Positions 45,119 to 63,285 are shown, counted from the stretch's first letter. The stretch is 64,000 bases of DNA from Macrostomum lignano (GCA_002269645.1 NIVC01001096.1:62001-126000), one strand, 5' to 3'. Made by a program: numbers and translations. The notes: a model not told the origin generated them from the letters alone.

Positions 45119-48100
45119 ATGAGTCCAACAAGCGGTCCAGATGTCATTAATGGTTGGAAAATTGTCACAACAGAAGAGACTGTTGTTGAGTCCTACTCTT
45201 TAGAGGTAAGGTATGATTAAATTATGATTCGTTTATTAATAGAATTCAGACGGAATTCCAGGATGTCAGGATGTCAGAATGTCAAAATCTCAGAATGTCA
45301 GAATGTCAGAAGTTCCGGATGTCCGGATGTCCGGATGTCCGGATGTTCGGATGTTCGGATGTCCAGATGTCAGGATGTCAAAATGTCAGGATATCAGGAT
45401 TTCAGAATGTCAGGATGTCAGGATGTCAGGTTGTCAGAAGTTCCGGATGTCCGGATGTCCGGATGTTCGGATGTTCGGATGTCCAGATGTCAGGATGTCA
45501 AAATGTCAGGATATCAGGATTTCAGAATGTCAGGATGTCAGGATGTCAGGATGTCAGAGACGTCATTTGGGGAGTGGTCGAAGGAAGCTCGAAGTTTCCT
45601 AGGCTCAATACTTCACAACTTTGAGTTAGTGTAATTTTGAGCTTGTGAAAGCGACGCGGTTCGATTTGTGTTTGATTTTGTTGATAAAACAAAATATTAG
45701 AAGCTTCAACCCCGCCTCGCCTCGCCGCAAACGCAATATGGTTGTATTTTTCGACACCCTCCTGTCACTGCAGACGACAATGACAGTCACCACAGAGTAC
45801 AGCGACGGGACCAAAACTCAGAGTAAGACGTGCACAACAACAAAGAAAGACAGTTCAGTTGTCACCGGTCTCACCACAAAGCAGGTCCACTCAGTGTATG
45901 GCCAGGACATCAGCTGCATCTCCAAGCAGCTCAATCTTATGCTCAAAGACAACTCATTGGCTGCCGATTACCTGCCAGTGGATGAGGTCAGCCTGTACAC
46001 CGGCATGCTGGATGGCATCCTGCTCTGCGCCATGGTCAACCTGCTCCAGCCGGACACCATCGACCTCAGCGCCGTGACCAGACGTTCCGACCTGAATAAT
46101 TGTCCACCTGAGAATGCAGAGCAGCTGAAGATTCAGAATCGAAATTTAGGATTCTGTTTGTTAAAACCGTTGGGCGTGTCCATTGATAGCTTGAAAGTTC
46201 AAGAGATGCTGGAAAAGGGCTGTGTATTCGCTCTGACCAGCATACTTATTCAAGTGCTGCGATTAACTACGATTGGTAGAATGAATTTCAAGGAACACGA
46301 AGTGTTGGTGTACCTGTTCGATGGGTGGTCGAATCCCGAGGAAGCCAGGTGTGAATTATTTACTTGGAGTTCAGTATCTTTTCGTGGTGGTTTCAAACTG
46401 TGTCTCAACCTGTCTCTCAATCTATGTCTCGATCTGCGTCTCAATCTGTCTCAGTCTGTCTCAATCTGTGTCTCAGTCTGTGTCTCAGTCTGTGTCTCAA
46501 TCTGTATCTCGATCTGTGTCTCAATCTGTGTCTCAATCTGTGTCTCGATCTGTGTCTCAATCTGTGTCTCAATCTGTGTCTCAGTCTGTGTCTCAATCTG
46601 TATCTCGATCTGTGTCTCGATCTGTGTCTCAATCTGTATCTCAGTCTGTGTCTCAGTCTGTGTCTCAATCTGTATCTCAGTCTGTGTCTCAGTCTGTGTC
46701 TCAATCTGTATCTCAGTCTGTGTCTCAGTCTGTGTCTCAATCTGTGTCTCGATCTGTGTCTCAGTCTGTGTCTCAATCTGTATCTCGATCTGTGTCTCGA
46801 TCTGTGTCTCAGTCTGTGTCTCAATCTGTGTCTCAGTCTGTGTCTCTATCTGTATCTCGATCTGTGTCTCAATCTGTGTCTCAATCTGTGTCTCAGTCTG
46901 TGTCTCAGTCTGTGTCTCAGTCTGTGTCTCAGTCTGTGTCTCAGTCTGTGTCTCAGTCTGTGTCTCAGTCTGTGTCTTAATTCTTGTTTTTTATTACCTG
47001 CCCTAATGGCCAAATGTCGAACCGACAGCTCAGCCGCAGCTATCTGAAGGCTTCCACTAGTAGGCTACAAACCCTTTTCCGTGATGGATGATCTGTAAGC
47101 TTAAGCTCAGTGAGTAAGCAAAGTTCTTCTTGAAGTTCTCTTGCTAGCCAACTGGGAATGTTTCACAAAATCATAACAAATGGAGAGTTGAAACTTTTTT
47201 CGCATCATCCGCAGAGAGATTCTTGCCACCGGCCGTGAAGAGATGCTACTCCGCTGGGTGAACTACCAGATGAAACAGGCAGGAACCGATCTCGAGGTGA
47301 AAGAGGTCGGCAAGAGCTTAGCAGACTGCAGCATCTACGCCAACCTGCTCTGGGCAGTCTGTCCCATCGCTAAGCGGGGCGCCCTCATGCCCATTGGCGA
47401 CGTCTTGAAGCCGGACAGTTTCGTCACCCGGGCGGAACGCGTGATTTCTAACGCCAGCAAGTTGAACATCGCTGACGTAATCACGCCGCAGCACATCGCC
47501 CACGCTGGCGAAGAGACGGACACGATAGCTGGTCTGCATCGAGTCTCTCTGAATGCCGCCTTTCTCTACAACATATTCTCCAGCTATCCCAATATTAAGG
47601 TGCCGAAAATGAAGACACCAACGCCGTCAACGGACGCCGATGCTGTAGTAGACGAATCGCTCAGAGAGCAGCTGAGATCCTGGTGCAAACGCGGCGCCTC
47701 CGAGGAGACTCTGATCCGCTGGCTGAACTCGTTCGGACCCTCGGATCCTGTGCAGTCGATTGAATCCGATCTGTGCAACGGCAGCGTCCTGCTCCAGGTG
47801 AGAACCGATCGATTAGCTAATCGATCAATCAAGGGATTTTTATCAATTAACTTACTGCTTTAATCCAGGTGTGGGAAGCCATGATCCCCGGCTCAGTCGC
47901 GTGGTCCAAGGTAAATCTCAAAGTCTACAGCTCGACGGTAGTGCAGAATACTAAGCGCAAATTCCAATGGATGTGCAACTGCGAAGAGGTGCTCAACTGC
48001 GCCATCAAGGCGGGCATCCCCAGGAACTGCTGCAGCCCGGCCGAACTAGCGAGCGGCCACGCAAAGAACACCATGTCGCTGGTGTTTCAAATGATGCGCC

Positions 48101-62100: not shown

Positions 62101-63285
62101 GAGAAGGGAGAGGAGAGAAGTGAGTGGAGAGAAGGGAGAGGAGAGAAGGGAGAGGAGAGAAGTGAGTGGAGAGAAGGGAGAGGAGAGAAGGGAGAGGAGA
62201 GAAGGGAGAGGAGAGAAGGGAGAGGAGAGAAGGGAGAGGAGAGAAGGGAGAGGAGAGAAGGGAGTGGAGAGAAGGGAGAGGAGAGAAGGGAGAGGAGAGA
62301 AGTGAGTGGAGAGAAGGGAGAGGAGAGAAGGGAGAGGAGAGAAGGGAGTGGAGAGAAGGGAGAGAAGAGAAGGGAGAGGAGAGAAGTGAGTGGAGAGAAG
62401 GGAGAGGAGAGAAGGGAGAGGAGAGAAGGGAGAGGAGAGAAGGGAGAGGAGAGAAGGGAGAGGAGAGAAGGGAGAGGAGAGAAGGGAGTGGAGAGAAGGG
62501 AGAGGAGAGAAGGGAGAGGAGAGAAGTGAGTGGAGAGAAGGGAGAGGAGAGAAGGGAGAGGAGAGAAGGGAGTGGAGAGAAGGGAGAGAAGAGAAGGGAG
62601 AGGAGAGAAGTGAGTGGAGAGAAGGGAGAGGAGAGAAGGGAGTGGAGAGAAGGGAGAGGAGAGAAGGGAGAGGAGAGAAGGGAGAGGAGAGAAGGGAGAG
62701 GAGAGAAGGGAGAGGAGAGAAGGGAGAGGAGAGAAGGGAGAGGAGAGAAGGGAGAGGAGAGAAGGGAGAGGAGAGAAGTGAGTGGAGAGAAGGGAGAGGA
62801 GAGAAGGGAGAGGAGAGAAGGGAGAGGAGAGAAGGGAGAGGAGAGAGGAGAGGGGAGAGAGGAATCGGTGTTAATCTACTGGCCTAATTTTCGGAAAGGT
62901 ATATATTACACGCAATCCTGCCGGCGCAGGTGTGGGACGCCATGATCCCGGATCCGTGCCTTGGAAGCAAGTCAAACTGCAGCAGTTTGTAAACACTGCT
63001 AGACGCAAGTTCAGCATGATTTCGAATTGCGATATAGCGGTTAAAATCGGGGACAAAAACGGGATATCAAAGAATGTCTGCTCGTCAGGCAATATTACGG
63101 CCGGAGAAACCAAGTACATCGCGTCCTTCGTGTTTCTCATGATGCGGCTGCACGCTCAGCTGCTTCGCAAAGGCATCATTGGTGGGCCTAAAAAAGTTGC
63201 GGAACTTGACGACAACGGGTTGACGAAATGGTTCAACGAAAGCATGGAGAAATACGGCAGCACTTTTCGGTTGAAGAGTTTAGAG
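59122..63285 (+). CDS. Divergent plastin/fimbrin-like protein, copy C, partial; exons 59122-59193, 59290-59792, 60887-61463, 62930-63285; last exon beyond the window; 1-bp frameshift at about 62948
   Basis: Same exon phases as A and B. Motifs [52 protein letters not shown]|[28 protein letters not shown] lacks one base relative to ATG ATC CCC GGC (A) and ATG ATC CCG GGC (B). Confidence 0.8.
59798..60872. repeat. Compound microsatellite (CATC)n 59798-60322 then (TATC)n 60355-60872, filling copy C intron 2
   Basis: Direct reading. Confidence 0.97.
61590..62862. repeat. 14-bp polypurine repeat GAGAGGAGAGAAGG (copy C intron 3)
   Basis: Direct reading; occasional GTGAGTG variant. Confidence 0.95.

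Follow-up and report, generated by a model that had tools for sequence, protein, structure and literature searches.

The 64,000-nucleotide (nt) stretch of DNA from the free-living flatworm Macrostomum lignano analysed here (assembly Mlig_3_7, GCA_002269645.1, NIVC01001096.1:62001-126000; hereafter the window, along which positions are counted) carries between 45119 and 63285 the first members of an array of five tandem paralogues, A to E, which are related to the fimbrins or plastins. It is probable that these genes encode fimbrin paralogues without the EF-hand head, in which the fourth CH domain, CH4, is split by a disordered insert encoded in the same exon. Each gene would provide a four-CH actin-crosslinking core, and the disordered segment, lying inside the last exon, would interrupt CH4 between its helices C and E. 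The split would predate the gene duplications, because an outgroup protein, P0007, has the split too. The insert would then have changed in length, between 53 and 911 residues, mainly by in-frame expansion of tandem repeats and low-complexity sequence. A to E and P0007 form a divergent fimbrin subfamily with a narrow taxonomic range.

The last exon is tripartite in all five genes. About 20 conserved residues (consensus D.xLKxTNxxGxxGERxLVE in A-E) are followed by an insert and then by a conserved tail of about 65 residues (consensus in A-E ..GxWxFxxV....FSxxAILMxxKxGxxVYASxLGP[DE]TDxxVYRSxLxxLNxLS). In gene A the exon starts with DLRLKNTNVIGYFGERLLVE (50194-50253, + strand), which corresponds to CH4 helix C and aligns to ..FKDKSLSS..LIDAIQP of plastin and fimbrin; its counterpart in B, DPRLKSTNALGFIGERVLVE, is identical to it at 13 of 20 positions. 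The inserts comprise 53 codons in C and in D, 95 in E, 282 in A and 911 in B, and the insert of P0007 has 62 residues. That of A (50254-51099, +) consists of polyproline runs, then of repeats of the SSGKTSGN type and then of an acidic end; 23% of its residues are proline and 19% serine, there are runs of 18, 13, 6 and 5 consecutive prolines, and a 27-nt repeat occupies 50734-50882. The insert of B (55360-58092, +) is built mostly of 30-nt units encoding the ten residues DAKKSSGTQL, in an array at 55442-57914 for which Tandem Repeats Finder gave a period of 30, about 82 copies and 89% matches; it is rich in Lys, Thr, Ser and Gln and has a net charge of +38. A Pfam match of this insert to HC2 (histone H1-like) was rejected as compositional. 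The inserts of D and E are rich in alanine (A/S/D in D, A/P/K/E in E), and hydrophobic residues make up only 7-11% of the inserts. Those of A and B are both of low complexity and unrelated to each other. After the insert follow the tails, DGDWIFEK...AAILMFNKAGIVVYASHLGPDTD..VYRSILMELNALS with the stop codon in A (51100-51294, +) and IGAWLFDS...AAILMLHKGGIIVYASRLGPDTD..VYRSLLLQLNALS with the stop codon in B (58093-58296, +). They align without internal gaps, with 34 invariant columns of 64-67. The three-part exon with unrelated inserts, which an earlier note on this DNA had described for A and B, was thus recovered in its lengths (282 and 911 residues), in the likeness of the opening segments and in the gapless tails.

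Relationship to fimbrin was established on the core of the proteins. When B was compared with the PDB by phmmer, the matches were the core of Arabidopsis fimbrin (1pxy, E value 2.7e-37), PLS3 (1.3e-22) and S. pombe fimbrin (4.5e-21), with alignments that extend over CH1-CH3 and into CH4 as far as FKDKSLSS (query residues 64-515 for 1pxy). The Pfam CH family (PF00307) matched two to three stretches, within CH1-CH3. Pfam scans of A, B, E and P0007 detected no EF-hand family; the N-termini of the family consist of 25-80 variable residues, and the P0007 mRNA has an in-frame stop 5' of its ATG. The model of E, which likewise has no EF hand, is based on transcripts. The term plastin-like, as first applied to these genes, has to be qualified by the absence of the EF-hand head. 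An exhaustive HMMER search, which covered 1.84 billion representatives, retrieved the M. lignano paralogues and a single outgroup, P0007 (672 residues), which is 34-40% identical to each paralogue. E values of family members were 1e-69 or better and then dropped to 1e-36 for generic fimbrins; identity of the family to any canonical fimbrin was 33% or less. In the same search several generic fimbrins aligned unbroken across the CH4 junction, to query positions 565-572. As far as databases show, the subfamily is confined to Macrostomum and one relative.

The identification of the tail as the C-terminal half of CH4, with helices E and G, is supported by several comparisons. A hidden Markov model (HMM) of canonical CH4 was built from 23 fimbrins, and shuffled tails were used as controls. 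The tail of P0007 alone scored 11 bits against this HMM, a value matched by none of 1000 shuffles, and the joined CH4 of P0007 scored 25.2 bits as compared with 12.0 ± 1.1 bits with shuffled tails. The P0007 tail is 46% identical to that of B, including SRLGPDTDxAVYxSLLLQL. For B itself, the joined CH4 with the real tail scored 17.9 bits, which was equalled by one of 200 shuffled-tail controls. After deletion of the insert, B is colinear with CH4 of L-plastin (2d85), with aailmlhkggiivyas paired with kyaismarkigarvyal. An hhalign comparison of the tail profile with 23 full-length fimbrins gave one match, NAKYAISiARKlGa..F..PEDI (P 0.028), and a MAFFT alignment puts the tail on CH4 helices E and G. 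An HMM of the family tails was compared with 15 canonical fimbrins, and in 13 of them its best local match was helix E of CH4. These results bear out the correspondence between AAILM..K.GI.VYAS and plastin YAVSMARRIGARVYAL which the earlier note had drawn.

A position of the insert in the linker that joins helices C and E of CH4 is likewise supported. In about 70 canonical fimbrins this linker has 13-15 residues in most cases and 8-32 in nearly all of those with a complete CH4. Here it amounts to about 70 residues in C and D, 72 in P0007, 114 in E, 299 in A and 928 in B, and to 17 residues after removal of the insert. The split layout was found in none of the approximately 70 canonical fimbrins examined, none of which has more than 32 residues at the site. 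The placement of the insert in a loop within CH4, as first proposed, is supported by these comparisons. A search with the joined-CH4 profile against an index of 5.8 billion proteins yielded nothing at E 0.001 and was uninformative, since P0005 itself was also missed. No contig turned up for P0001 or P0005 when their exact sequences were looked up. The exact point of insertion is ambiguous, before or after VNWELV, because in P0007 HMMER matched canonical CH4 positions 47-62 (VNWELV..EDK) on both sides of the insert. This double match is at most suggestive of a split that started when the short VNWELV segment was duplicated in place.

The fold was predicted with AlphaFold2 for natural E, using a 75-row alignment that contained canonical fimbrins. 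The model (predicted local distance difference test, pLDDT, 79.7; predicted template modelling score 0.80) joins both halves of CH4 in the full-length protein. The tail reaches a pLDDT of 85-91, with helices at residues 642-658 and 674-690, while the insert (547-626) falls below 50 and is looped out as a disordered segment. The best PDB matches of the model in Foldseek are the fimbrin cores 1pxy and 1rt8 (E 1e-16, target-normalised TM-scores 0.62-0.72). The prediction indicates that a split CH4 is compatible with one domain, and is not independent proof of it.

We then considered whether the insert is coding. Its length is a multiple of three and it contains no in-frame stop in five of five genes, as against 5 and 11 stops in the two other frames of the A insert and 6 and 75 in those of the B insert; when the A or B insert was base-shuffled, none stayed open in 2000 trials. 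The repeat units of B comprise 78 of 10 residues and 3 of 11 residues (33 nt), all indels being in frame. Taken alone, the stop-free repeats of B are weak evidence, because of the 90 single-base substitutions that the consensus unit allows, only about 5 would introduce a stop. A codon-position test on these units was set aside, being confounded by unit duplication. The proline runs of A are made of interspersed CCG, CCA and CCT codons, with variation mostly at third positions and few replacement changes. As to transcripts, P0007 is encoded by a 2155-nt Logan contig (SRR30276804, L002) with one open reading frame (ORF) that includes the 62-residue insert; this contig looks like an mRNA because the ORF runs uninterrupted across all exon junctions. 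The GenBank models of D (640 residues) and E (693 residues) also retain the insert, with the whole last exon included, and this assembly was annotated in GenBank from RNA-seq data, by genome-guided assembly of transcripts and TransDecoder (PMC5730564). Between two copies of E, the core differs by 5 nonsynonymous and 10 synonymous changes and the 95-codon insert by 3 and 1; these numbers, small as they are, would fit a constrained core and a relaxed insert loop. The limited data suggest that the inserts may evolve nearly neutrally. If the constraint on them is relaxed, they may represent expansions of repeats that are tolerated, in a genome which is rich in repeats.

The gene models underlying these comparisons were built from the sequence on the + strand, and every intron in them is GT-AG. 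Gene A has five exons (45119-45205, 45774-46348, 47215-47797, 47869-48246 and 50194-51294) and an open frame of 907 residues. Gene B also has five exons (52162-52275, 52362-52843, 52957-53527, 54433-54792 and 55300-58296) and an open frame of 1507 residues; a weak donor, GTTGGG, is used in its intron 3. Of gene C, exons 1 to 4 (59122-59193, 59290-59792, 60887-61463 and 62930-63285) lie in the window. The last exon lies beyond it, in locus L003 (NIVC01001096.1:121172-146813, GCA_002269645.1), the start of which (1-4829) is 100% identical to window positions 59172-64000; there, at L003 4963-5382, it is intact and has a 53-residue insert. Protein comparison gave 47-52% pairwise identity among A, B and C (about 50% for A and B). 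The three were at first described as same-strand paralogues with identical intron positions and phases. In a protein alignment the intron positions do coincide, and the exon lengths modulo 3 are 0, 2, 1, 0 in A and B alike. The phase of C differs because of a 1-nt deletion in exon 4 (356 nt as assembled), located in a C run 3' of VWDAMIP, which causes a frameshift. In the duplicated copy of the locus, L001, exon 4 of C (3701-4095) has other indels than in the window. Gene C is either decaying or mis-assembled. UniRef proteins of M. lignano are 99-100% identical to exons 1-4 of B over the aligned parts; two of the models skip exon segments (overall identity 88% and 84%), and none of the UniRef models of B goes beyond exon 4. 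Minisatellite and microsatellite arrays take up most of the intron sequence in A, B and C (48367-49928, 54843-55106, 59796-60880, 61662-62900), including a 14-nt unit repeated 17 times, tetranucleotide runs of the GGAT/ATCT type and GAGAGG-rich arrays open on both strands. The window as a whole is eukaryotic and very rich in tandem repeats.

The cluster was initially taken to consist of three genes and proved to have five members, D and E following directly downstream. A query of exons 4-5 of A and B uncovered E as P0006 (PAA62695.1, BOX15_Mlig006537g3, 693 residues). The gene order in both L001 and L003 is C, D, E and then a major facilitator superfamily (MFS) transporter gene. Gene D occupies L003 6442-9227 and gene E (PAA72374.1 / PAA62695.1) L003 10001-15642, both just downstream of the window; in window positions 1-45000 no additional gene copies of the cluster were found. 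The cluster occurs a second time, with about 98% identity, on NIVC01001909.1 (L001), in keeping with the large-scale duplication known from this M. lignano strain. Exon 2 of C and D is 98.7% identical (window 59240-59790 and L003 6539-7088), and the last exons of the two genes differ by one residue (L003 4963-5382 and 8808-9227), while the remaining gene is only about 75-85% alike. The shared near-identical exons point to recent gene conversion or partial duplication as their probable source. The final 97 codons of E, that is, part of the insert and the tail, recur as an isolated 99% copy at L003 20552-20842, about 5 kb downstream of E, which is annotated as a partial protein of 100 residues (PAA72375.1).

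With respect to function, we infer from the sequences that the family proteins still bind and cross-link F-actin and that they do so without Ca2+ control, as the absence of EF hands would mean no Ca2+ regulation through the usual head. In T-plastin, CH3 makes the actin contacts of the second actin-binding domain (ABD2), whereas CH4 stays off actin and docks against the surface by which CH1 binds actin, keeping ABD1 auto-inhibited; the CH4 mutation R594A raises bundling (PMC9478642). This mutation lies in the helix after the CH4 insertion site. Since CH4 of T-plastin does not touch actin, an insert in CH4 should not interfere with the binding of filaments; by analogy it would either point outwards from the filament or affect the closed state formed by CH1 and CH4. 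To judge from their sequences, the family members are most likely actin-binding or actin-crosslinking proteins with a fast-evolving, repeat-driven loop. The inserts are probably fast-evolving and largely tolerated appendages. It is possible but unproven, by analogy with other proteins, that the polyproline of A might serve as a ligand of profilin, SH3 or WW domains and that the basic 10-mer array of B might serve as a long spacer. Specific roles of the loops would be speculative, and so would the idea of an exchangeable side arm, or of a cytoskeletal system of sperm, epidermis or microvilli, that the earlier note had put forward.

A stronger role of the inserts, as functional paralog-specific modules in place of the missing EF-hand regulation, is conceivable and yet doubtful. 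Being located beside CH4 helix E, which in T-plastin keeps ABD1 auto-inhibited (PMC9478642), they might adjust how the cross-linker switches between its open and closed states. The polyproline of A might bring profilin-actin or SH3/WW proteins to bundles, and the basic 911-residue array of B might, as an entropic brush or spacer, determine how far apart the filaments lie in some specialised structure of the flatworm. If this were true, the family would be the first case of a split CH domain acting as a scaffold for evolvable disordered arms.

Several observations weigh against a split CH4 that is made as predicted. First, the sequence signal of the M. lignano tails alone is weak. The score of the real joined CH4 is equalled by 10 of 200 shuffled-tail controls in E, 27 of 200 in D and 32 of 200 in A, and without the first half of CH4 these tails reach about 0 bits with the canonical CH4 HMM; the sequence link between tail and CH4 depends on P0007. 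In Pfam scans with PF00307 CH4 was unmatched whether the insert was present or removed, so that joining the halves, as had been proposed at the outset, did not lead to a CH4 call. The tail profile found no plastin among PDB sequences. The sole PDB matches of the tail-only and joined-CH4 profiles were designed helical repeat proteins, which were judged to be spurious helix-loop-helix matches. Secondly, the confident model of E is not independent of its alignment, because canonical fimbrins were in it, and a run with a 4-row alignment of paralogues only gave a pLDDT of 36 and was discarded. Thirdly, the last exons and inserts of A and B are in no database protein, and no transcript was found for the giant inserts. 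Fourthly, in-frame cryptic donors follow GERxL (CTC/GTAGAG in A, CTC/GTTGAA in B), and phase-0 acceptors, cag/GAT and aag/GAT, occur shortly 5' of the tail in A and B. Finally, C is frameshifted in both assembled copies.

The last of these points, together with the lack of a full annotated model for A and B, would agree with the view that A and B (and C) are duplicates in decay or without function, whose inserts represent neutral growth of repeats, only D and E being working genes. The relaxed constraint on the E insert (3 nonsynonymous against 1 synonymous change) and the many arrays in the window point the same way; the M. lignano genome is very repeat-rich, with 15% tandem repeats (PMC5730564). 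However, the ORFs of A and B are intact over 907 and 1507 codons, their GT-AG introns are intact and their CH cores are about 50% identical. Translation is favoured by a frame that is maintained through 2.7 kb of repeats and by the mixture of synonymous codons in the polyproline runs. Transcripts overlapping repeat annotations were removed before submission of the annotation (PMC5730564), which may be why full models of A and B are missing from GenBank. It is unlikely that A and B are decaying or non-functional.

It also seems improbable that the insert of A and B is an exitron, spliced out of most mRNAs to leave a near-ordinary CH4 and open merely by its repeat structure and by chance. It is true that both genes have GT right after GERxL and a phase-0 AG/GAT 10-18 codons 5' of the tail, that the weak donor of B intron 3 is already in use and that neither insert is in any database protein or transcript; in addition, tandem repeats leave other frames partly open, frame 2 of B having only 6 stops. 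But the candidate donors poorly match GTRAGT, the pattern of most other introns of these genes, and the insert is kept as a stop-free multiple of three in five of five paralogues. Moreover, the models of D and E, which derive from transcripts, retain it, as does the mRNA contig of P0007, the indels among the B repeats are all in frame, and the proline runs of A vary at synonymous positions. A spliced isoform of A or B lacking most of the insert may exist, to judge from these sites. That CH4 is truncated or defunct and the tail an unrelated C-terminal module on a disordered linker (such as a helical hairpin through which the protein dimerises or binds a partner) is very improbable, for in spite of the missing Pfam CH4, the scores near 0 bits and the PDB matches to designed helical repeat proteins rather than to plastin, the P0007 tail matches the second half of canonical CH4 and is clearly homologous to the M. 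lignano tails, the placement on helix E and the single hhalign match are at the expected site, the linker returns to 17 residues without the insert, and the tail is confidently predicted within a fimbrin-core fold.

Other features were noted around the array. A gene with a Rab-GAP TBC domain (Pfam RabGAP-TBC, E 4e-38) has exons at window positions 9786-11536 (+). One long ORF at 28382-29551 (-) encodes a zinc-finger protein of the C2H2 type, the N-terminal half of which contains tracts of polyGln, polyAla and polyPro. Near the zinc-finger gene, at 29628-29879, there is a dispersed element of about 250 nt, probably a small transposable element, which recurs with about 90% identity at L001 10114-10365 and 12847-13095, these two copies being in opposite orientations inside introns of gene E. 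An array with a period of 28 nt (window 12124-12805) recurs at about 88-91% identity in the MFS gene region 3' of the cluster (L001 18708-19124).

No literature on genes A to E was found, and for the gene identifier Mlig006537 nothing was found in the literature or supplements of M. lignano papers, nor an expression class. There is an annotation gap at this locus, as public protein sets of M. lignano lack the two most extreme genes or give them in truncated form. Provided that the proteins are produced as predicted, a CH domain of an actin cross-linker would bear up to about 900 disordered residues in a surface linker and still be conserved, and the family would be a natural experiment on the role of CH4, which in plastins concerns the release of ABD1. 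It would exemplify how tandem-repeat expansion can give large protein differences between young paralogues. It would also offer ready-made constructs, one core with loops of 53, 95, 282 or 911 residues, for work on bundle geometry and auto-inhibition.

Some features of this family are shared with other known systems. The insert of A resembles the proline-rich regions of formin FH1, Ena/VASP and WASP in having proline runs and disorder in a protein predicted to be actin-associated. It differs from them in that A has no FH2, EVH2 or WH2 module and that the other paralogues lack such proline runs. The tails of neurofilament-M/H and of MAP2/tau are long, repetitive, charged and disordered segments attached to a filament-binding module. 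The insert of B, and of B alone, is of this kind, with a filament-binding module that is here predicted, but it lies inside a folded domain instead of at a terminus and has no KSP-type phosphorylation repeats. In PLC-gamma and syntrophin, PH domains are split by inserted folded domains. The genes described here have in common with them a fold encoded in two halves, a long intervening segment and a predicted reassembly; in contrast to the folded domains found there, the insert is here of low complexity and disordered, with a 17-fold range of length among paralogues. We found no described split CH domain, although no dedicated literature search was made for one. The closest system is fimbrin/plastin itself (PLS1-3/LCP1, Fim1, FIM1; 1pxy, 1rt8, 7r94), which gives the best sequence and fold matches, has four CH domains in the same order forming two actin-binding domains, and is colinear with the present proteins through CH4 once the insert is removed. 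Compared with it, the M. lignano genes form a five-member tandem array whose products are at most 33% identical to canonical members, lack the EF-hand head and have a CH4 which is beyond Pfam detection and is split by 53-911 disordered residues.

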